The notes under the pieces were generated by a model that was not told the DNA's origin, searched no databases, and was given only the letters and a program-made list of their open reading frames with translations. 64,000 nucleotides of DNA, from positions 2,394,948-2,458,947 of the forward strand of contig MU057651.1 of assembly GCA_013265495.1 (NCBI GenBank). The letters are read 5' to 3'. The position numbers and the translations under genes were made by a program. The DNA comes from Vicugna vicugna. Its lineage: Eukaryota. Below, piece after piece: positions 7,627 to 54,624 of this stretch. How positions within the stretch are numbered: the first letter of the stretch is position 1; the number at the start of each line of letters is the position of its first letter.

Positions 7627-7746
7627 GGAAGGAGAGCCCTGCTGTCAGTGACACTGCGGACGACAGTGAGGAACCCATGCCGGTCCCCGAGGACCTGTCC
7701 ACCACGTCCGGAGGGCAGCATAATTCCAAGAGTGAGAGAGGCATGG
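7627..7746 (+). CDS. IKZF1: IKZF1 exon 3 ([39 protein letters not shown]; contains PEDLS CtBP-binding motif)
   Basis: ccacag| acceptor and |gtaagt donor, 120 nt, phase 1-1. Peptide matches Ikaros residues 14-54, including PEDLS. Confidence 0.97.
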
Positions 7747-38652: not shown

Positions 38653-40069
38653 TAACGCAGCTTTGAGATGAACGGTGTTCACGTCTCGCCCTGTCGCTCC
38701 TTCACTCGTCCGACGGTGGACCAGTGACCAGAACGCCTCCCTGCGTTGCTCCCCGTCACCAGCACGCACGGCCCGTCGCGGAGGGGCTCCTTGGAGGTTG
38801 CCCAACTCCCCTGTCAGGGATCTCAGTGGTGTCCCAGGGAAGTGGGGCTGTTCCGTCACCTAACTGGGGAATTTTATATTCTGCCGTGTGTTGTGATGGC
38901 TGTGATTTTGAAAAGGTCAGCGCCTCCCTTCGCCTCCCCCTCCTTGTCTGCGATGGCTTGGCGCCCCCATGACCCAGAGCGACCGAGATGCCAGAAGTCG
39001 ATACAAAAGGCTGCAGCTCAGTGCAAAGGTCGCTGTGAAGTCAGCATCACCTGGACCGCAGGTGCACCCAGGGGGGCCCCGGGCGACGGCTCTGTGGACG
39101 GGACACGGGGTAGCGGCGGTGTCATTTGGATGATCACAGAACAAGGTTTTGTTAGCAAATAATCGAGGTTCTTCAGGGAATAGCTTTGGAAGTGTAGCCC
39201 AGACTATGCTTCCCCATTATCCTAATATTTTGATAAATTCTTCACGGTTAAAAAAAAATGGCGGGGGAGGATCTTTGGCCAGAGAAGTTTGGAAAAGACT
39301 GGTTTTAAGCAAATCTGAGTAGGTCTGTGTCCTGCAGGAAACTCTTAATACAGTGGGTCATACAACACGTTTAATTGAGCAGCTACTCTGTGCACGTAAC
39401 TCAGTCGCTGGGGTGTCACTTCTGCAGGGAAGACGGCATGTGTGTGCGCGTGCGCGTGCGTGTGTGCAGATCTGTTAAGTCTCAGGACACAGGCACACGC
39501 GGGAAAGCTCTGACCTACAAAACGGAGCAGAAACTTGGAGATCTGAGGTGATGATTGCATTTAAGGGGGCAGCTGATAAAGACGACCCGCGGAAATCGGT
39601 ATTTCGTTTTGAGGGGGACGGAGACACTCATGGTTCCCCCACTCAATACGTGGCTTGAACGTTTTCTAAATTTTCTGCAAACACCTTCTAAGAAAAAGCT
39701 CCTTGGGGAACCCCGGCTGTGCGGACAGCCTGTGACGGTTCACACAGCTTTTGAAAAGGCAGGTGCCTCCCGGGAGAAGCTCAGGTGTGATGCTGGGATC
39801 TGGGGCCCACCTGTCCCAGGTTGGCTGGCGGGTGTCCCAGAGTTCTAGAATGTTCCGGGTTGGCGGTCCCAAGACCCCCAATACACCAGAGGGGGCTCGC
39901 CATCTGCGTGATTTAATGCCGTGGGCGCGGCCCTCCGGGAAGTCCAGCCCTGTTCCTGAGTAATAACACATTCCTTTCAAATAATAATAATAATGCTTTC
40001 TTTTAAACTCTCGCTCCCCCTCTCAGACGCTGCTACAGCCCAGTTTTCTCTTTTCCTTCTTTATTGCAG

Positions 40070-40129
40070 CTGCCTATGCGGCTGACGGCTTTGGGGATTT
40101 TTGTGTGATAATTCCCAGTTCTTTCTCTC
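40070..40129 (+). CDS. IKZF1: IKZF1 alternative 60-nt exon 3B (IK-H-type insert; AAYAADGFGDFCVIIPSSFS)
   Basis: Long pyrimidine tract plus ttgcag| acceptor and |gtaagt donor, exactly 60 nt, phase 1-1, no stop. Resembles the human 20-aa insert VTYGADDFRDFHAIIPKSFS as recalled (about 12/20 identical). Confidence 0.85.
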
Positions 40130-40347
40130 GTAAGTATACACTTTGCATCTGGAAAACGGTCACGTGTATTCATCTCATACTCGTGTCCATCCTGTAAATA
40201 TTGTGAATGCATGCTTTTCCATCACCCGCCTTCATACTTGATTAAAAAAATGAGATAAATTAAATATCGACCATGCTGTTCACTGAAACGTCTGCCGTCA
40301 GGAGCATGACAATACAAGGAGGTATGTACGCAAGGTTTTAGACTGTT

Positions 40348-40503
40348 AAAAGCAAGGGGAACACTGCTCAGTATGTTGCAATAACCTCTAATGAAAAAGA
40401 ATGTATAAACAAATGTATGTGTGTATGTGCATGACGGGGACATGACACTGTGCACCAGAAGTTGACACATTGTAACTGATGGTCCTTCAATTAAAAAAAA
40501 AAA
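40348..40503 (+). mobile_element. L1 3' end with poly(A), about 220 bp downstream of exon 3B
   Basis: ggaacactgctcagtatgttgcaataacc...tgtgcaccagaagttgacacattgtaactg...ttcaattaaaaaaaaaaa. Confidence 0.82.
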
Positions 40504-41544
40504 TGATGGGTGTAGAAAGCATGCCTTTTGTGGCGGCAGGGTGGTAACAGTGAGGGCAGAAGTGACAATAGTATTAACAGAATTATTGCTCTGCAAATGC
40601 TGTTAAACCGTCTTGTTATTAATGTTCTGATTCTCTGCTTTTTTGTGGATGGAGTGCGGTGCTGAGGGCCGGACTTCCTGACACCCTTAAGCAACACGAC
40701 GTGCTTTCAAGATGCATTTTACATGCTTGTAGGGTGGGAGGCAGAGACACACCCTCCCCCTGTGGCTCTTCAGTGCTCATTTCAGAAGTGAGAAGGGACA
40801 CATCGCAGGGCTTCGCGGCCGTTAGCCCGTGGTCCCCGCCCCCCGAGCAGCGGCCGGTGGGACCTTCCTGATCTGAGCTGTCGGACCAAAAGCAGATGTT
40901 GCTTTCATTTTGCCTTTTTAGGTTTGAGAGAGGGCGATAAATACATTTGGGCAACATCCCTAAAGGAGTATTTGAAGGAGTGAGGAGTGCTTTTTCTAAA
41001 AGGTGCAGGGAGCCGGGTGCTTAAAGCAATGCAAGCGGGTTGCCCCCTTTAGGACTCCAGACTCTGCATCAGGGAATTTTGCATTATCATAAGGCAGCGT
41101 GAGAAGGCACATGGTGCGTGTTAATACCGTTCACAGTACACACTGTCCTAAAAGATGTCAGTAACAGTTAAGACAGGTCTGTGACATCCCGGTGATCAGA
41201 AACTCTTTGGTACCTGCAAGGTTTTGCACTGTCAGCCTGAGCCGTCTCGTTTTCTCATAACCTCGATTGGCTGCTTTTCCAGTCTGTAAAAGTTGCAGAG
41301 ATCTTTCTCTTCCTCATGTCTCTGTGAGTTCGCTGAAAAACAACAGCTTCATGTTTACTGTGAGACGTATGCGTAAGTCTGTATAAATGTGCATGTGTCT
41401 GCGTATATGTGCGAGTGTGCCTATACGGTGACTTAAAACACCACGGTACCAGGGCAGAGAAATAATCTCAATTTCGAGACGGACAGTCACGTTGCAGAAA
41501 TGAGAAAAAGTCAAGTGCGCTTGAGAGTAAGCTAATACCAGAGC

Positions 41545-41711
41545 GGGGCGGGTGTTGCTCAGGGGCAGAGCGTGTGCTTAGCATGCACGAGGTCCTGGGT
41601 TCCATCCCCAGCCCCTCCACTTAAAAAAACAAGCAAAAAATTAATTTAAAAAAATACATAAAGAAACCTAATTACCTCCCCGCTCCAAACATAATAATAA
41701 TAATAATGAAA
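41545..41711 (+). mobile_element. Vic-1-like SINE
   Basis: ggggcgggtgttgctcaggggcagagcgtgtgcttagcatgcacgaggtcctgggttcc...aaacctaattacctcccc...(aat)n tail. Confidence 0.9.
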
Positions 41712-42225
41712 GAGCAAGGTGATACCTTCCAAGACGCGTTTGCATTAAGTCTGAGGAAGGCTCGGGCATCTGGCACCATCGAAGCTGACCCTCTGGTGAA
41801 AACCTCAGACCCCACTTTACGGCGTGGACAGAGACACAGGGTCTGGAGGCGTTGCAGGTGACCATGTTTTGATTCACTGCCTGTCTCTATATTACACAGT
41901 TGGGTTCACAGGGTATAAGCACCCCTTTGTCTCCTTCTCCATCCCCTCCCGGGTACCCGAATTGTAACCCTCCCCCTCCGCACTCCCCACTCCCCCCCAC
42001 CTCCCGCCCCCAAACAGCAACCCAGCTGTTCTGGGGCCAACATCACCACCTAGAGGTCACGGTGGAGAATTACCCTCCTGACCCCTCATCTCTTTTTCTT
42101 ACTACTTGAAAATTGATAACACAAACTGGCCACCTCTTTTCGCTACCCCCCCCCGATTTCACTCCACTTAAAAGCTTAAAACGTCAAAGAAGGGTAAACA
42201 TTTTTTTTTCAGCAGCCAAACGTAT

Positions 42226-42463
42226 CTTTTATTTTTTTTTTACTGAAGTATCATCAGTTGGCAGTGCTGTGTCAGTTTCTGGTGCCCAGCGTCATGTCCC
42301 CGTCATACGTGCACATACATATATTTTTATATTCTTTTTCATTACAGGTTACTACAGGGTGTTGACTAGAGGTCCCTGTGCTTTGCGGGAGGACCTGGTT
42401 GATCTGTTTGATACATAGCAGTTAATGTCTGCAAGCTGTAAATTCCCAGTTTATCCCTTCCCA
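42226..42463 (-). mobile_element. L1 3' end
   Basis: ttttactgaagtatcatcagttggcagtgctgtgtcagtttctggtg...aaattcccagtttatcccttccc. Confidence 0.82.
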
Positions 42464-42489
42464 AGCTAGCAGTTCTCCAATGAATAGGA

Positions 42490-42775
42490 AAAAAATATTT
42501 TTAAAAGATGAAGAAAAGATTTGCAAAAGAAGAAACTGACAAGGGCGGGATTTCCATAATATATAAACAGCTCACACAGCTTAATAAGAAAAAACAAAAA
42601 CAAAAACTCAGTCCAAAAATGGGCAGAAGACCTAAGCAAGCAATTCTCCAGTGAAGACATACAAATGGGCCACAGGCACATGAGAAAATGCTCAGTGTCG
42701 CTAATTGTCAGAGAAATGCCGATCAAAACTGCAGCGAGGTGCCACCTCACGCCGGTCGGAACGGCCATCCTTCAA
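42490..42775 (+). mobile_element. Degenerate L1 ORF2 fragment (C-terminal region)
   Basis: The antisense ORF 42466-42768 ([46 protein letters not shown]) is the typical antisense reading of L1 ORF2; the sense strand resembles EKIFA...REMQIKTT..YHLTP. Confidence 0.9.
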
Positions 42776-45700
42776 GAGGATAAACGTATTTCTAATCATG
42801 CATCTCTGCAAGGAGAAAGAACCCTACATTTCATAAGTTAGAATAAATGGTTTTATGAGCCTTAAAAATGCTTAAAAGTCTTCCTAAATCCGTTAGAGGC
42901 AGCGCAGAAACATGGCTTCACCTGAAAGCTTCATTCTGTTACCCTCATTCAGGCTACACCTTAAATATTGTTGTTGCATTCAATGTGTTGCTGGGTGGTG
43001 GCCGGTGGCCGGAATATTTCTGTTTCTTGTTTTGCCGTTGAAAATATTGAGCAGTCCAGGTTCACATGGCCTCAACTCGTACTGCAGAGCCAGTTGGGGA
43101 ATGTCTTTTCAATGGGAAAATGCAGTCTGAGTTCCAAATATTTACCTGAGCAATTAAGTATAAAGAAACATTCTAAAAGGAAAAAGAGAATGAAGGGGAG
43201 ACACCATCCATTTGTAAGGCGGGGGCTGCACTTTGCGTTAAAACGTTTTAATCGTTCGTGACTGCACGCGATGCTTGGCGGCAAATCTGGGCCTCTGGCC
43301 CCGCTGACCCAGAATCACCCGGATTCTGCAGAATCTTCCGTGCCAAACTTGCCCATGTGCTGAGGTTCCGGGGCCGGGGGCGGGGAGGGTGCCCTTAAGA
43401 CCGTCCTGTTACTAACACCATCGCTGTGAACGCGGCCTCTGAAACATACGCCGGCGAGACTTTAGTTTTTCCTAATTCTGAATTGCTTCTGTGAAGGAAC
43501 GTGGCTTCGGCTCAGGGTTTGAAGACACCCAGTCTTCGCGTGATTAAATAGTGACACGGGACCCTGTCCGTCAGCTCTCGGTAGTCAGAGGGAGAGCTGC
43601 CGGGTTAGACGCGAGCCAGGGTGGTCCAGAGTTCTCCGATCCGTGTTCTGTGTTTCGGCACCTTACCGAGCCGGACATTTTTCTAAGCGGTGGGGGATGA
43701 AGTTATAAAAGATTTAAAAGCATGACCCTTCGACTCAGGAGAGTGTAACATTTCACAGACGCTAAGCAGCTTGGGGTCCAAGGAGATGGGGCGGAGGGAG
43801 GGGTCTGGGAATTGGGAGGAGGCTGACATCAGCCCTGGCCACTTCCCATGGGGACAGCCGCCGTGGGGTGGACCCAAGTTGAGGGGGACTGACTCATTCC
43901 TGAAACTGACACACAGCCCCGGGGCGGGTCTGAAGGGAGGAGACTGAAGGCCTGGTCACATGGCCTTCTCAGCGAGGGGAGTCAGAAGCCAGCCTGTCCC
44001 TTTGGCTGGGCCCCCGGGCGTCTGCTTACGACAGTGCAGGGGACGGGCAGCTCAAATTAGTCCCCCGCGTCGCCTCGGGCATCCGTCCCCTCTCCCCCTT
44101 CCCTGGTCCGGGCAGCCGCTGGTGCCTGACTTCTGCAGCTTGTGTGCCTCAAAATCATGGGTACCCCCGGCACCCAGATCCACACAAGTCACACGCAGGG
44201 ACAAGGGCCAGCCCTCTGCACACGAGCGCCCGTCCCTTCTGCGGCTCCTTGAGTGACAAGCTGCCTGCAGGGGAGCCTGCCAGCCAGGCTTGGACGAAGC
44301 CACCGCCTTGTGGAGGCCACCCCTCCTTCACCCCACCTCCTCCCTCCCTCCTGGAGCCTGCTTGCTCGAGATGCTCGGGGTCTCACCCCTCTTAGCGCGA
44401 GGCGTGTTTCTCTGAGTCCCGCACGTCCCGTCCCCTCAACGTCCCCGGGGACCGGCTTCTGTGTCCCTTTGATGTCCTTCCTTCCTGCTGACCCTCCTGG
44501 GCCGTGCTCGCCTGTCTTCGAGGAGGCGTCCTGCCTGGCCAGTGCAGGAGACCCGGTTGTCCACTAACCCAGGCCCCCAGATGGCATCTTCCGCCCTCTT
44601 TTCTTGGACCACACCGCTGCCCTAGCTCTCCGTCCCCTAAAACCCTCAAAGCCATTTTCACGCGGACATAAGTGAAGCCAAGAGACCCCTGTCCCAAGCT
44701 CACGTGTCCAATGCGTGCACTTCAATGCAGGTGGACCTGGCTCGTGCGTCTGTGAAGTTCGCCTTTGGAGGCCTGGACTGTGTCTGCCTCGTGTTAGGGT
44801 AGTTATACGCCCGGATGTCTGTCATCTCCAAAATTATAAGCCTGTGGCCCGTTTGCTCCTGCTCGTCGGATGAGAGACCCCGTTTTTGCAGACACCCTCC
44901 CTGATGGGCAGAATCAGGGCCTAGTTTGCATCTGTCCATGGAGATGGACACATCTCTCCCCACATGGAGGGAAAACTCGCACGTGCTTGCAGCGGAAATG
45001 CCGGCAGCCACATGCTCCTCACCTGTAACCCCCGCAGGCGTCCTGTCCCCTCTCTCACCTGCCACAGAGCTGCCCCATCGTGCCCTGGCATGGCGTCTCT
45101 TGTAAGGAGCCCTTGGTCCAGCCCCTCTTATGTATGGTCCCTTGATCTGGGGGGCCACGCTCTGGGGGTCGGTCAGCACACTTTTTCTCGGAAACCTAGA
45201 ACATCACAGCATCCTCAACTTTATTCTTCGAACCTTGCCTGTTCCTGCAATTTACAACCAGCTCCCCCCACGCCTTTCCATCTCCTAGCCTCTTTTTGGT
45301 TCTATTAATACAGTTTTCTCAGAGAAGATGTCGCCTGGCATGGTTAATGGCAAAGACATGCCTTCAAGAACCGCTGGTCAGATGACGGACGGGTGTCAAT
45401 CTTCTGGCTGGAGGGCCCCTGGGATATTTAAGGCGACTTCTGTCCTGCCCTTGGCCGTCTCTGTCCTCGTCCCCTTCCCTCCTGACACCCGTCCCCTCCT
45501 CTGCCAGCATGGGAGATGTCAGCACTCAAAGCCCGCCGCTGCGTCCCTGCAGCCTGCTCCCTGCTCCTCCCCCGGAAGGCGCCACGCCGTCCCCGACGTC
45601 ACAGGCCACAGGGCGCCCCGAAGGGTCACAGAACACCTGTCTGTCTGAATAAGGCAGGGCCAGCGGGGGTCCCTGGCAGGTGAGCCTGTGCAGATGTGCG

Positions 45701-46349
45701 TTTGGGGGAAAGCAGGGGCCGGCTCTGTGCGGAGCCGAGCGGAGGACCATCCCGAGGGGGCTGTCCGGGCGCTCGTCCACCTGCCTGGGCCTAGTCCCCC
45801 AGCTACAGCCCCGCGTCTCGGCTCTGGTAGCTCACTCCACTGGGCCCTGCGAAGGCCCCATCTCATCTTTAAAAGCCAGCCGATGGACTGATTAAACGTA
45901 GTCCCGGGCTAAGGGGTGCAGAGGTCTTTTAGGTGTAGAATTAGCCTCCACCTGAGAAGCTAACCAGCACGTGGCAGAGAACGCGAGTCTGGAGAGCTCA
46001 GAGCTCAGACCGAGGCCGGGGGCATCCTTGGCTGTCTGGTCTCCCTTCTCCGCCGTGTCTGCAGGACTCGGTGCCTTGTCTCTGGAGGCCGGGGGAGGTC
46101 AGCAGGCGGCCGCTGAGATGCAGGCCGCTCCTGGGAATCTTGGACGTCTCAGGACAGTCTGCCGGGATGCAGGGATCGCACGGGAACAGGTGGCCCTGCA
46201 GTTCTGGAATCTTCTTGCCCACAGTGAGGGCTGTGGTCCAGCTCAATGGTTCCATTCACGCATTTGTCTGCAAGTCTTCTCTCCAGAGAGCTCGGGGGAA
46301 TCCTGGGTGGGAGAGCAGATGGGAACGCGGGCGCAGGAGCCGCTCCCAG

Positions 46350-46470
46350 CTCCGCCGCTGTGTGACCCCAGGCAAGTTGCTCGACGTCTCTGTGCCGGAG
46401 CTCCTCCAGCTGTGAAATGCAGTAGCAGTGCCTCGCTTATAGGGCTGTTGTTAAATATTACGGGGTTCAA
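46350..46470. mobile_element. MIR fragment
   Basis: ctgtgtgaccccaggcaagttgctcgacgtctctgtgcc...ctgtgaaatg...cctcgcttatagggctgttg. Confidence 0.7.
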
Positions 46471-46519
46471 TATTACAGTGCGGTGGCCATTCCTGGGGTG
46501 AGGCGGACGCCCCTTCTGT

Positions 46520-46930
46520 GGAAACGTGACGTCACGTGCCATGCTGGTCAGTGTTGTAAGCTCACTCGGCATCTCTTCACCCACTGTGTCCCCTCAGTGC
46601 CCCCACTGGACCATGGCTGACAGTTACCCCATCGTTTTTACAGATGAGGAAACCGAGGTATAAAGAAGCTACGAGGCTTACCCAAGATCCCAGAGCTTAT
46701 GACGAGTGGAGCTGGGAGGAGGGTGTAGCTCAGGGGCAGAGCCCGTGCCTTGCGTGCATGAGGTCCTGGGTTCCATCCCCAGCACTGCCCTTAAAATAAA
46801 TTAAAATATAGACCTAATTACCCATCCTCTACACCCTCTGCCAAAATAAAAAAAAAAAAAAAGAGAGAGAGAGAGAGAGGAGCTGAGATTCCAAGCCAGA
46901 AACTGTGGCTTCAGAGTCTGGGCTCTGGAC
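46520..46930. mobile_element. MIR (opposite orientation to 46350-46470) split by a SINE
   Basis: tttttacagatgaggaaaccgagg...cttacccaagatcccagagct..[SINE]..gagattccaagccag...ggcttcagagtc. Confidence 0.72.
46714..46879 (+). mobile_element. Vic-1-like SINE nested in a MIR
   Basis: gggaggagggtgtagctcaggggcagagc... with an A/(GA)n tail; ggagctg is present on both sides (TSD). Confidence 0.88.
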
Positions 46931-46985
46931 TTCCCCAGCATGAGGCATGTGTTGAGTGAAATGAACCTGGGGGGGAGTTACTAAC

Positions 46986-47170
46986 ACAGGTTCCCTCCCA
47001 TCTGAGTGTCCGTTGGAATCCTCTGGGGGCTTCGTGGCAACGCCAGGGCGGGGCCCACCCCTGGGGTTTCCGGTTCAGTGGGTCTGGGGTGGACCCACGA
47101 GTCTGCTCCTTGGGCAGGATCTCGGGAGATGCTGGTGGTGGTGCCCGGGGACCACGCTCGGAGAGCCCCA
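46986..47170. mobile_element. MER5A-like hAT-Charlie MITE relic
   Basis: ggaatcctctgggggctt...gggcccacccctggggtttccggttcagtgggtctggggtgg...gatgctggtggtggtgcccggggaccacgctcggaga follows the MER5A layout. Confidence 0.75.
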
Positions 47171-47865
47171 TGATTCACAACGTTGGGCGAAGGTTTTGTC
47201 ACCGTGGTTCCTGTCGGTCCCGTTGGTTACTTTACTTGGCAGAGTGTACCTACTTCCTCTTACTAATCTTACTGACTCTGATGGAAATGACGGCTTTCAG
47301 CGTGACTACAGGTTATCCCAACCAGCGTTGGATTCAGCCATGCATCAGCGTTTCAGAAGAATGCAAATCAAATGTCTTGTTTCCTTTACCAAGAAAAATA
47401 CGTGCATGGCGTGAATCATGACCCTGACTGTGACGCTGGGGAAACAGAGCAGGGTGGATGGTGGCTACTATACTCGGTGGGAGGAACCCTTCGCCCCACA
47501 CGTGCACAGGTCTTTCTTGTTGAAAAGCTAGCCGAGACCTCTTACGTTCACAAACCATCCCCGTCAACCCTTCAGGAGCTGGAAGAAAACCTAAGAAATC
47601 ATGGGTCTGCTTTAGGACACATGGCTTATTATCATTATGTGATAAAAGGGATGGAGAATGATGGTGCATCAAAGAAACGAAAGAACAGAACTCTTTCAGG
47701 AATCCGTGGTCAGAAATCTGAGCATGCGTTCACTGGGTTGTGTCCCTACGTTTATCAATCCATGAAACAAACAAACAGAAAAGGTAGCAGCGGAAAGTGA
47801 GGTTTTTTTCAGGCTTGATAAGCACTTTCTAGGGATTTTTGCCAAACAAGGTCACACACACCTCC

Positions 47866-47985
47866 GGGACGCTGTCACCCCATATGGGCCAAATGGCTCA
47901 CCCTTAAGAAAACAGAACCGAACGAAACGGGAAGGGACTGATACGCTGAAATCCACTCCTCAGACGTTTCCACTGAGAAGTCATG
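47866..47985 (+). repeat. 120-bp direct repeat, copy A (upstream of exon 4)
   Basis: 108/120 identical to 49325-49444 by manual alignment, with no gaps. Confidence 0.95.
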
Positions 47986-48387
47986 ATCAGTCCTCACCTG
48001 TTGATGGGAGTGGTGCTTTTGGCTCACAGAACTTGGCCTCAGGCCACTCCGGAGGTGCTACAAGGTTGTCCCTGTGCACCCGGTGACCTGAACGTGTTCA
48101 GAGGTCCCCCAACTTGAAAGCGAGACTTGATAAAACGGCGTTTTGTGCATTTTCACACTCTGCCATTCAGCCCTTTGGAAAGGACAGGCGAGTGGTCCCG
48201 AACCCATGACATCTCCCGGTGGGTCGCTACGCCCGGAGCTCGGGGCCACGGTCGCACAGGTTGCACGGTCACCCCTGCTGTACGTTTAGAAGCCCTCTGC
48301 TTCCACTGGGTCGTTCTTTTTGCTGTTGTGCTGTTTTGCCTTGTTCCTGCGATGACACTGAGCGGCACCCTGTGTTGTCTCTTTCAG

Positions 48388-48648
48388 CCGGTAATGTTAA
48401 AGTAGAGACTCAGAGTGATGAAGAGAATGGGCGTGCCTGTGAAATGAATGGTGAAGAGTGTGCAGAGGATTTACGAATGCTTGATGCCTCGGGAGAGAAA
48501 ATGAATGGCTCCCACAGTGCCCAAGGCCACAAAGCTTTGTCAGGAGCCGGAGGCATTCGACTTCCGAACGGCAAACTAAAGTGTGATGTCTGTGGGATAA
48601 TTTGCATCGGCCCCAATGTTCTCATGGTCCACAAGAGAAGCCACACGG
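48388..48648 (+). CDS. IKZF1: IKZF1 exon 4 (VKVE SUMO site K58; zinc finger 1 [21 protein letters not shown])
   Basis: ctttcag| acceptor and G|gtaagg donor, 261 nt. Overlaps ORF 48219-48737, which contains the Ikaros F1 sequence. Confidence 0.98.
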
Positions 48649-49324
48649 GTAAGGCCTGGCGTAGACCCTCCGTTGGCGGCCTGGAGAGGTCCGTGGGGTG
48701 TAGCAGAGGAAATGCCCTTTTCAGCAAAGTGTTCTGATCCTGTTGCCAACTGACTGGCAGCATAGCAGTGGCTCCCAGTCAGAGCGAGGCGTAGCTTTCT
48801 TATCCTACATGAGCAATCCGAACCTGAAATCCACCCTCCCTGGCACCATACCCAAAAAGACACCTGGGTTGTTGATTTCTTGGGTCTTTTTCTTTTTTTC
48901 TTTTTTCTTTTTCTTTTTTTTTTTTTTGTTTCTGTTTTCCGTTATTTTAATATGATCTCCATCCCATAAAATTGTACTGCGAACTGGACGGTGGTCGAGT
49001 TTTTTAAATTTGATGAGGCTTTCTGGCAGCCAGTTCTGTTTAATGTTTCGCTCCTGGCTCTGTTTGGGGAGCTGGGAGTCACCAATCTGGCAGGCCAGGG
49101 AGGCGGCCTGGGGGCCAAGACTGGCTACTTCAGCCCACTTTTCCCTTCTGTGTCCACGTGCTGCTTTGAGGTGACAAAAACAAATACTTACTTCAATTTG
49201 ATCAGAACAAAAAAAAAATCAATTCAATCCTACAAAGTTAAAGCCATAAAACAGAACAGGAAAGGTAACAGCCTCACGCGAGCTCTGTCGAGGGCCGTGA
49301 GGTTAAACCCGCTGGACAGCGGCA

Positions 49325-49444
49325 GGGACGCTGTCACCCCACATGTGCCAAATGGCTCACCCTTAAGAAAACAAAACCAGATGAAACGGGAGGAGACTGA
49401 CACGCTGAAATCTACTCCTCAGACTTTTCCACTGAGCAGTCATG
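49325..49444 (+). repeat. 120-bp direct repeat, copy B (downstream of exon 4)
   Basis: 108/120 identical to 47866-47985. Confidence 0.95.
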
Positions 49445-52400
49445 GGTCAAACATGCATTTTGGGGAGGGATGCAAATGAACACGGCTTGAGTTTTAGAAG
49501 CACGAGTTGAATGAAGGAATGGCCACAAAATTCAGTCTTTCAGGAAGTGCTCAGTTTCTCCGACGGCTTATCCTGCAGCGGGCGAGACTTCCAACGAGAC
49601 TGCTTGCTTGCCATCGCTTTTCACCTCAGATTGGTAAAGAACTTAACACCCAAAGCCCCCATCTAGTAGATGATGTGATGGAGGTTTTGCACGTATCAGA
49701 GAATACAGTATTCTGTGTCCAAAAACAAACAAGGGAGAGAGCCTCGTGTCTGATGGCTGCGCCCAGGCTCCTGAGAGGTTCTCACATTGGGGGCTGGATA
49801 TAGCCAGGGTCTTGGTTCTGTCCCCTCCTCGTCCCCCAGTGTGCAGTCCTGGTGGCTGGCCTGTCACGTTCTTTTCCACCGGGACTGTCAGGTCATCCCT
49901 GATGGCACTGGAGAGTCTTCAAAATACAGTATCAACAGGTCACCTTCTCGCCTCTTACCTTTAACTGCCTGCACGAGGTGTCTTTTGAGTTGAACAGAAA
50001 CGTTGCCCTTCTGCCCTAAAACTTTTAAAGGGGGCAAAACACAATCAATTCGCCAAGTCCAGTGGTCACTGAGAGCTTGGACATAAAACACGCCCTGATA
50101 CATTGCTGCCTACGGGATGGCATTGCAGGTCAGCACAAAGCCGGTGTCTACCACTGTTCTCCACAAGAGAAGGGCAAAAAAAAAAAAACAGATTAAAAAG
50201 CAGACTTTAGAGGCAAAACAAACTTTAAAAGATGTCCCAGGGACGTGAGGAGGAAGACTTGAAAATCACAGCTTCGTACAAGTCTTATGTGGGGATAGAC
50301 AGGTTTCTGATTATCAGGAAATGAAGCAGGAATTCAGAAAATCCATTGAGCCCAAATACCGATTTGTCCAGAAATGCAGATCATTTTTTAATTTGAATCA
50401 GGAGGTTCCCCCAGACGACGGCCTGCTGGCTGTCGTGCAGCTGGAAAACCTGTAAAATACATTTATTTTCAAAAAACATTCATTTTCAATAAAAATTTAA
50501 GTTCTACAGCCAAGCAAGCCTGACTTTCCCTAACGTGCCCCTTCACCCTCCAATTACCCGGTGAAGTAGCCCTGTCACGTCCAGCCCCACGTGACGCTCC
50601 CACGAGCATGGTCAGTCTCCCCCCACCCACCCCGTTTTGTAATGAGGTGGAAATTAGGGTGAAGGTGGGTTTCCCGGTGATGGACACTTAACAGAATACA
50701 CCGGGAGCCACGCTAATACACTCCTGACGGAGGAATAGCCTTCACAAATGAATTACTTTCCTGCTAATTCATGTAAAGCCTGGCTGTACAGTGAAAATTC
50801 TCTTAAATAAATATTTGATCAATGAATGAAATCCTGGCATACGAAATGGCCAGAATATAATGACTGCCTGCCTGGATTAAACAAAAAAAAAAAAAAAGAA
50901 GAAGAATTGCATTTAATGAATTAACCTGCCAAGTACGGATATGCAGAGAAGCATTCGCTGCTTGCCGCCTTCTCCTCCCCAGGTGGCAGCTAAGCGGCAA
51001 GGACAGGCCAGTAAATCCCAGAAACACGGACATACACAACAGGTTTATGGTTCTTGCCTTGATTTCTGGGTTAAAAAAAAAAACTGAAACAGAGAACCTC
51101 TAAATTCTCTTCCCAGTGTTTTTCCCCTCATGTAATTACGGAGTCAGAGTGTAGAAATATCTTGGCCAAACTTGGTTTGAATAAACAGACGTGCTAGAAA
51201 GCTTTCCGTTTTCCTGGCATCTGAGTGGAAGACACGAGAAGCGCATGCTTTGCTCCTCAGCGACTCCGCCCTGGCCCCTCTAGGCCTAAAAGCACCCCCA
51301 GAGCAGCGCTTCTCAAAGCTTCAAGTCTTCAAGAAACGCAGACTCTGATGCAACCCCAGAGGATGCCGGGGTGCACAGGCTCAGAGCATCCGTGGGCGGC
51401 GGGGCACGCGCTTGGGTAACGGACCGTGCACAGCGTGACTTCAGGGGGCTCTTCGTCTGGGAGCTTAGGGGCCACCTTACTTCCCCCCCGAAGCCGGGAC
51501 CTGCACCTGCCGGTCCCCGGGTGTCCTTCCCGGATGCCGGGGCGGTGTCCCATGTCGCCAGCTCCGTGAGGGTCCGTTGGTGCCACCATTTCACTTCCCC
51601 AGGCTGGCGGCTCAGTTTCAATTTTTTTGAAACCCAAGCATAATCGTAACTCCTGCCCCCCAGCCTCTTGGGGTTAGTGGGAGAACCAGAGGCCAGAGAC
51701 GTAGGAAGCAGCTTGCAGGGCAGGGGAATCCCTGCCAGGCGGAGATCCAAACTTAATTTCCTAAATGATCTGAGTTTTAACAATAAACGCCAAGGAAAGT
51801 GTCCGGATTATGGTTAGTCTGGGCTGCCCGGAGCCCCCTCGGTCCCCATCTATAAGGCGACAGGGCGCAGTCACCATGATTTATAAACACAGCATCGGAC
51901 TGGAATGCTGCTCCGAGGCGTGGCTGCGTTAGACCCAAGCGAATTCTTGCAGTTCCGTGTACTTTGTTCAATTCACCTTCTTCTCGTACACGCCCAGAAG
52001 TCCCATGATGACTGTCTTTTTTGACCCCGTGAAGTTATTTGCAGGAGCTGAACCATCCTTACAGAGAGTCCCCGCCACTTGGCAGCTCTGTGTAGGGTCC
52101 CTAGGGTGAAAAACTGAATTTTGAATTCATGCCATGGAAGTCCTCATCCCACGTAAATAAAACGGAATACAGCCTTGGAGAAACTGGATGTAACTTGGCT
52201 GCCGTGAGCAAGCTGGCCACCTGCAGGAGGGAGGCGGCTGGCCAACGAGAGCACGACAGACAGACGGGGCCGCGTTCTGCCCTCAGGCTCCAGGGCCCGG
52301 CTCCCTTTTCCTGCTCGCACCTGCAAAGGGAAACCCCCTCGGGGGTTTGTCACTTCGGGGAAGGCTCCCTTCAGGGGTCCCCGAGCCTCGTGTAGGGATT

Positions 52401-53881
52401 CAGGCCAGCACAGGCAATCAGAAACAGATTTCCAGGAAAGCTTGCCAGGCAAGGCACCAGTTACAGACTGACTCAAATCAGAAGACAGATTTCACTCTCG
52501 AAGAGACGGTCCCCTCTGTCTGTCCTTCCCGCCCTGATTTGCAGAAGGGGCACCCGGCTGTCACGCCCTGTCCTTGCTGTCCCCGCTGACTCTCTGTCCT
52601 GCACAGACCCCCGGCTGCACTGCAGGTTGTCCCTGCAGCCATTAAGCCAGGCGCCCAGCACGGAGGGAGCCCTCGACGGTGCGTGCGGGTCACGCCACGC
52701 CACGCTGGCCACCAGGAGTGTCCCCCATGCTCAGCATCAGCATTTTCATGGCATGGGGTCTCCCAACGTCCCAGGCCTCCCCTCCCAGAGTGAGTGGTTG
52801 GAGGATCCATCAATTTTCCCGTGACTCAGCTCCCCAGCCCGCTTGAAAGTTAAAATGAGGCTAAGCATGAAATTCAGGCACCAAAACAGACTGTTAAAAT
52901 TTAACCTGGCACCTGTTTTAATAGTACCAGTATCCGTCTGCTTAAATTGCTTTGGATGGGTTCTGTCTTGTTCCCCAAAATCATATACATTAATTGGGGA
53001 AATGGCTAAATATACATTTTAACACATCCTTTTTTTTTACCCCCCCCCCCGAAGGAGAAACTGTCCTAGGGAAATGCCTTTTCATGGAATCTCAACACCA
53101 GACAGTGTGGTCCTTCAGACAGCTCTTCTTCTAAAAAGAAAAAAAAAAATACATTTGGTTTTGAAAGAGCTTAGGTGTTGACTGACTGAGGACCAACGTA
53201 CCCCCGTCTTCAGTGAGAGTTAACAGAAACACTCACCGACGTAGATTCCAAGAGCTGACTCCTTTGCAGCATCCTTTCCTGTTGGCAGACACACATTTAC
53301 CACTTGGTCACCGTGCAGGGTTTGGGGACCCGAGATTCCAGTGGTTTGGGTCTTTTTGCTTTTTGGGGCCTTTTATATTTTTTATTTATTTTTTATTTTT
53401 TATTTTTTTGGTCCCCACTCCAGCGGCGTCACCCCTGCGAGGACTCTGAACCAGTAATTCGCATCTCTTAGAAATGCATTCTGAAAATGCAACTGTCCTC
53501 AGTGGCTATAGGGGGACCCATGAGACCTTAAAGGTCTGGGGGGACCCCGAATGAAGCAAAAAGCCAGGCATGTCCATGCAGCTGGGGTTTAAACGCACCT
53601 TCGTGGGGAGGTGAGGGACATTTCTTTGGACGATGCAGAGCCTCCCGGCCCCTCAGCTTCTCGTTTCATTCGCTCTCTCTCCCTCTGTGTCTCTTTCCTG
53701 TTCGCCCGCGTAGGGACAGACAGGTAATGGAGGAGAAATTGAAAGGGAAAAAACAGGGAAAATGTAAATGAATTGAACTTATTATAACTGCTATAATGAA
53801 GTGGCTTTCATTTAAATATAAGAATGTAACGCTGAAATGAACTTCTGATCCTGAAATGCATTTTTAATGAGTTCCCTTTTT

Positions 53882-54023
53882 NNNNNNNNNNNNNNNNNNN
53901 NNNNNNNNNNNNNNNNNNNNNNNNNNNNNNNNNNNNNNNNNNNNNNNNNNNNNNNNNNNNNNNNNNNNNNNNNNNNNNNNNNNNNNNNNNNNNNNNNNNN
54001 NNNNNNNNNNNNNNNNNNNNNNN
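53882..54023. other. Assembly gap (142 N) in intron 4
   Basis: Run of N. Confidence 0.99.
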
Positions 54024-54057
54024 AAACGTAGCAGTCACTTTATTTAAATGAGTTTGA

Positions 54058-54624
<567 letters not shown>

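Follow-up and report, generated by a model that had tools for sequence, protein, structure and literature searches.

The window, by which we mean the whole stretch of 64,000 nucleotides analysed here, carries exons 3, 4 and 5 of IKZF1, the gene for Ikaros, which is a master regulator in the development of lymphocytes. A short cassette, exon 3B, lies between exons 3 and 4 and is the subject of this report. The features to which we refer are the following:

7627..7746, + strand: IKZF1 exon 3; it ends in phase 1, with a G that opens a split codon
40044..40069, + strand: polypyrimidine tract and acceptor gcAG of exon 3B; the tract is conserved from pelican to mammals
40070..40129, + strand: IKZF1 exon 3B cassette; 60 nt, phase 1-1, flanked by AG and GT
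40130..40137, + strand: donor site of exon 3B, GTAAGTAT; invariant in 9/9 genomes compared
40130..40330, + strand: conserved downstream intronic block, including UGCAUG at 40208-40213; delimited by the divergence between the window and Dasypus
48388..48648, + strand: IKZF1 exon 4, zinc finger 1; 261 nt, phase 1-1, starting with two codon bases
54287..54454, + strand: IKZF1 exon 5, zinc fingers 2-3; 168 nt

The peptide of exon 4 matched Ikaros proteins with E values down to 1e-47. That of exon 3 is near-identical to the RefSeq Ikaros proteins of Camelus and Vicugna, with a single difference (DDSEEP vs DDGEEP). When the whole window was compared with the IKZF1 locus of the alpaca, the identity was 97.5-99.5% by segment and about 98.5% overall. 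The 1-kb region around exon 3B is about 92% identical to Camelus ferus and C. dromedarius, and the identity to red deer around the exon is 70-76%. The original prediction had taken the DNA for that of a probable camelid, and the high identities to alpaca and Camelus confirm this. Judged from these alignments, the window is from a South American camelid and is not identical to the alpaca reference. An exon identical to that of the window is present in the genome of the alpaca (L004 44883-44942) and also in run X15, on a contig of genomic type whose flanks have alleles of the alpaca type. X15, which by its label comes from the species of the window, has these alpaca-type alleles at 39881, 40147, 40162 and 40163. 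The differences of the window from X15 and alpaca reflect either different Lamini species or deeply diverged haplotypes.

The exon has the layout ...ttttctcttttccttctttattgcag / 60 nt (40070-40129) / gtaagtat. Its acceptor is preceded by a tract in which 21 of the 22 positions at 40044-40065 are pyrimidines, followed by gcAG; the sequence ...gccttctttattgcag of this tract has been preserved between pelican and mammals. When exon 3B is read alone, frames 1 and 2 contain stops and the frame set by exon 3 is open. The spliced translation of exon 3, exon 3B, exon 4 and exon 5 has no stop and stays in the Ikaros frame throughout; the join of exon 3B to exon 5 (40129 to 54287) is likewise in frame. 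Inclusion of the exon turns the junction codon Ala into Ala...Pro and adds the insert peptide (A)AYAADGFGDFCVIIPSSFS, so that in the spliced frame the insert reads A-AYAADGFGDFCVIIPSSFS-P. The coordinates, the length, the splice sites and the open frame had all been predicted, and all are confirmed. Thus the exon combines the features of the exon 3B class, namely a place in the intron that separates exon 3 from exon 4, a length of 60 nt in phase 1-1, homology and canonical splice signals. A join to exon 5 also occurs in a Bos taurus isoform (P0499), in which exon 3B is spliced straight to exon 5 and the zinc finger 1 exon is skipped (...IIPNSFS-RERPFQC).

Protein searches retrieved 73 database proteins with the 3B insert, in 29 distinct versions. 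The carriers among placental mammals include ruminants, horse, rhinoceros, carnivores, bats, primates, colugo, elephant and armadillo, together with many rodents, among them five cricetids (annotated), guinea pig, beaver and marmot; for mouse, the original prediction mentions that Ik-H is reportedly lacking. Beyond the placentals the insert is found in opossum (Monodelphis), echidna (Tachyglossus), many birds, turtles, lizards and snakes. The amniote consensus of the insert is VAYGADGFRDFHAIIPKSFS. Over the 73 proteins Ala5 and Phe11 are invariant, and Gly4, Arg9, Asp10, His12, Ala13, Ile15 and Pro16 are nearly so. A gene model of the bat Rousettus (P0007) has a 3B-like peptide joined to exon 4. 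At the level of DNA, the exon of the window and its flanks align with the orthologous position in alpaca, two camels, red deer, armadillo, vole, a molossid bat and pelican. The acceptor tract and the GTAAGTAT donor are common to the genomic 3B copies of deer, armadillo, vole, molossid bat and pelican.

The presence of exon 3B in placentals, a marsupial, a monotreme, birds, turtles and squamates indicates that it dates at least to the ancestor of the amniotes. The view that the exon is ancestral and no human novelty therefore stands, and the exon is older even than Boreoeutheria, as the carriers in Afrotheria, Xenarthra and the non-placental groups demonstrate. In the frog and fish Ikaros proteins that were sampled no 3B-like segment was seen. 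At the junction of exons 3 and 4 in the sampled fish only Labrus has an insert, which is small and unrelated (ACIISTNASISQNINDA). The teleost Ikaros isoforms labelled X2 (P0161, P0204, P0177 and others) are 30-60 residues longer than those labelled X3. In three passerine models (P0379, P0380 and P0463) and in Tachyglossus (P0455) an extra coding insert is located between exon 3 and exon 3B; an example from a bird is ...AAYFSVLRKPPSTSSFPG.

Outside the camelids the exon is under strong constraint. The pN/pS ratio of exon 3B is 0.05-0.29 among deer, armadillo, vole and pelican (Nei-Gojobori). Between armadillo and vole the exon differs at 3 of 60 sites and the flanks at 139 of 370 (p = 4e-8); between deer and armadillo the values are 6 of 60 and 127 of 384 (p = 1e-4). 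These comparisons point to strong purifying selection on exon 3B in most lineages.

An exon of this kind has been described before. A 60-bp insertion "referred to as exon 3B" was reported in 2013, when GenBank did not contain it as an exon (PMC3706598), and Ronni et al. (2007, J Biol Chem 282:2538) is cited for the human Ik-H isoforms (PMC7239353, PMC13299819). Current RefSeq and Ensembl-derived protein sets contain exon 3B in dozens of species. Exon 3B is hence an already known, ancient alternative exon, which is widely annotated. The human exon 3B of Ik-H (also called Ik+) is like that of the window in gene, intron, 60-nt length, phase and place ahead of zinc finger 1. For the primate peptide we used the inserts of two New World monkeys, Saimiri (P0391) and Cebus (P0466), which read VTYGADDFRDFHAIIPKSFS. 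The insert of the window is identical to them at 12 of 20 positions; an identity of about 12/20 had been predicted for the human insert. The residues Y, AD, F, DF, IIP and SFS, which were expected to be retained, are indeed common to the window and the monkey inserts. The 8 of 20 residues that differ include Gly4Ala, Arg9Gly, His12Cys and Ala13Val, so that the exchange of His for Cys, with the gain of a cysteine, was also correctly foreseen.

The annotation of the camel family is uneven. Four isoform models of the dromedary, X1-X4 (P0514, P0518, P0517 and P0427; accessions including XP_064338421 to XP_064338427), have AAYAADGFGDFRAIIPNSLC between exons 3 and 4. Here the orthologous exon is annotated as coding and is spliced in the order exon 3, exon 3B, exon 4. 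The dromedary insert has in common with the window the residues Ala1, Ala4 and Gly9, which go back to the camelid stem. It differs from the window by 6 nucleotides and 5 amino acids: the dromedary has Arg12, Ala13, Asn17, Leu19 and Cys20, the window Cys12, Val13, Ser17, Phe19 and Ser20. The closest annotated species is Vicugna pacos (X1/X2, XP_072811605 to XP_072811608). Although its genome contains the identical exon, exon 3B is missing from the listed protein models, in which exon 4 follows exon 3 immediately. The exon is likewise omitted from the listed isoform models of C. ferus and C. bactrianus. The expectation that annotation would easily overlook the exon holds for the species nearest to the window and fails for the camel family, since dromedary X1-X4 carry exon 3B and the listed alpaca models do not; outside the family it is contradicted by the dozens of species in which the exon is present.

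The outcome of the analysis is to this extent a corrective one. Exon 3B is not specific to primates and needs no general rescue from annotation; it is present in public protein sets of species as far apart as lizards, birds, elephants, cricetid rodents and the dromedary. A small new point comes from the camelids. By comparison of the peptides, their copies are among the most diverged of all, which is a minor new detail, and the annotations of alpaca and Bactrian camel omit the exon although the DNA is intact.

The camelid peptides are 6-7 positions off the amniote consensus (13-14/20 kept), a distance that is equalled only by Molossus (7) and a worm lizard (6). Birds, turtles and echidna are off the consensus at 2-4 positions. 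Four of the camelid changes, Val1Ala, Gly4Ala, Arg9Gly and His12Arg, are placed on the stem of the family. The Lamini further have Arg12Cys, Ala13Val and Asn17Ser, and Camelus has Phe19Leu and Ser20Cys. In total the camelid tree contains 9 nonsynonymous and 2 synonymous changes, compared with 0N:3S in the deer lineage (Fisher p = 0.027).

The 9N:2S count was obtained by hand parsimony with deer, armadillo and vole as outgroups. It replaced a strict relative-rate count for the camelid stem with Molossus as the one outgroup, which gave 2 vs 2 in the exon, because Molossus has two of the changes convergently.

The direct comparison of the two camelid branches gives a similar picture. Between Lamini (the window) and Camelus there are 5 nonsynonymous changes and 1 synonymous change, with a pN/pS of 1.55, a value above 1 that is not significant. 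The exon differs at 6 of 60 sites (10%) and the flanks at 160 of 2895 (5.5%); the rate of the exon is not significantly higher than that of the flanks (p = 0.11-0.15), and it is not lower. The open frame by itself is weak evidence of constraint, because it survives 9-11 random substitutions in 82-86% of simulations. These tests on camelid substitutions rest on 11 changes in 60 nt, with P-values of 0.03-0.15, and relaxed constraint in camelids is therefore suggestive and unproven. What the comparisons suggest is that the camelid insert has lost visible constraint; the splice signals, the length and the frame are kept.

The original prediction had seen the intact camelid copy as evidence of an exon under constraint, and had named a substitution rate equal to that of the flanking intron as the finding that would speak against it. 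Constraint holds for amniotes at large, where the non-camelid pN/pS ratios are low and the exon is far less diverged than its flanks. It fails for the camelid copy, which changes as fast as the flanking intron or faster; the intact copy can hence not be used as an argument for constraint.

Our preferred explanation is that the window contains at 40070-40129 the camelid orthologue of IKZF1 exon 3B, the Ik-H cassette, whose peptide no longer shows visible constraint in camelids. We regard this as very probable. The exon stems from the ancestor of the amniotes or from an earlier one, and most lineages have kept it under strong purifying selection. In camelids the near-invariant residues Gly4, Arg9 and His12 have been replaced, and Lamini and Camelus have each drifted further. 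The exon would be spliced between exons 3 and 4, or between exons 3 and 5 when exon 4 is skipped. Its inclusion would add 20 residues to a disordered region just N-terminal of zinc finger 1 and leave the frame unchanged.

The same substitutions can be viewed in another way. GC-biased gene conversion, CpG effects in a region rich in GC, or else positive selection may have produced the camelid changes in an exon that is still used, an account which we find possible but doubtful. Of the four nonsynonymous changes on the stem of the camelids, three lead from weak to strong bases (T>C, A>G, A>G), and the Lamini cysteine arose via CAT>CGT>TGT, that is at a new CpG. The bias extends to the flanks, since within 400 nt on either side of the exon (39670-40529) 33 stem changes are weak-to-strong and 17 strong-to-weak; the GC content of the window is 47-65%. 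However, the two changes that are specific to Camelus are both C>G and neutral for GC content, the sites are far too few for a formal test, and the pN/pS above 1 lacks significance. GC-biased gene conversion that fixes mildly harmful changes, relaxed selection and adaptation could each underlie the drift, and the data are too few to separate them.

The intron around the exon bears on the question whether the cassette is still in use in camelids. Downstream of the exon the divergence between the window and Dasypus is 20-26% in the first 200 nt and 39-48% further out. This block contains the RBFOX-type motif UGCAUG, 79 nt downstream of the 3B donor. The motif is found at +79/+80 in camelids (Camelus and alpaca), deer, armadillo and vole, and at +94 in pelican. 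Molossus, the other lineage in which the 3B peptide has diverged badly, has lost the motif. Regulated cassette exons typically have conserved flanks like these. With a conserved UGCAUG within about 300 nt downstream, exon 3B is a candidate for an RBFOX-type regulated cassette, which we offer as a lead only.

These flanks also weigh on a less favorable reading, in which the camelid exon 3B is a decaying relic that is rarely or never included and evolves neutrally, and in which so far no stop has arisen and no splice site has decayed. The pN/pS of 1.55 between Lamini and Camelus, an exon rate at or above that of the intron and the replacement of residues which are near-invariant across amniotes would all be expected of such a relic. 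So would the listed alpaca and Bactrian/wild camel isoforms without the exon, and an open frame is no obstacle in view of the high survival in the simulations. On the other hand, neither camelid lineage has altered the acceptor tract, the AG, the GTAAGTAT donor or the 60-nt length. The 100 nt nearest to the exon are less diverged between the window and C. ferus (5/100 upstream, 3/100 downstream) than the exon itself (6/60), the downstream UGCAUG is kept, and four dromedary RefSeq isoform models contain the exon. Taken together we consider a relic unlikely. It is extremely improbable that the 60-nt open stretch arose by chance as a pseudo-exon with no relation to Ik-H, and the alignments rule this out: only its small size and the stops in frames 1 and 2 would fit, and they are opposed by the syntenic place between exons 3 and 4, by the base-for-base alignment, across both splice sites, to the annotated 3B exons of eight other genomes, and by the 13-14 of 20 residues in common with the amniote consensus.

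We also searched RNA data for the exon. The words of exon 3B occurred in none of the indexed RNA runs searched. Small RNA runs of a related organism contained 7-12% of the words of the 601-nt stretch 39800-40400, and the words of the exon were not among them. At about 40340-40495 the window has a SINE-like element, which ends in a tail rich in A; it probably explains the matches of these runs to the stretch. Three raw RNA runs had 0 reads on the stretch and hence provide no test of inclusion; the one contig that covered the exon, from run X15, is of genomic type. The kept splice signals, the conserved flanks, the UGCAUG and the dromedary models lead us to infer that exon 3B is probably still included in camelids.

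To our knowledge, nearly all work on the Ik-H isoform has been done in human cells. Ronni and colleagues reportedly found in 2007 that the insert alters the preference of the long isoform for DNA sites, and through dimerisation also that of its partners. In a later article the insert is reported to modulate Ikaros DNA binding and the interplay of isoforms in human cells (PMC13299819). An AlphaFold2 model of the fragment from exon 3 through 3B to exons 4/5, computed with the help of 36 orthologues, had a mean pLDDT of 40 and one of about 30 over the insert. The region of the insert is thus modelled as disordered, and we draw no structural inference from it.

For the camelid cassette, a changed function of the insert may be surmised. 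We advance only tentatively, as a rather speculative view, that an exon which was near-frozen over about 300 million years of amniotes has been released from peptide constraint, or pushed by GC-biased gene conversion, only in the camel family, and that, where it is still spliced in, a camelid Ikaros of the Ik-H type may behave differently. The findings are relevant only for the annotation of camelid immune genes and for the question of which residues of the insert are essential. Within the camelid inserts two cysteines were gained independently: Cys12 of the Lamini by CAT>CGT>TGT (40103-40105), and Cys20 of Camelus by TCT>TGT (L002 12029-12031).
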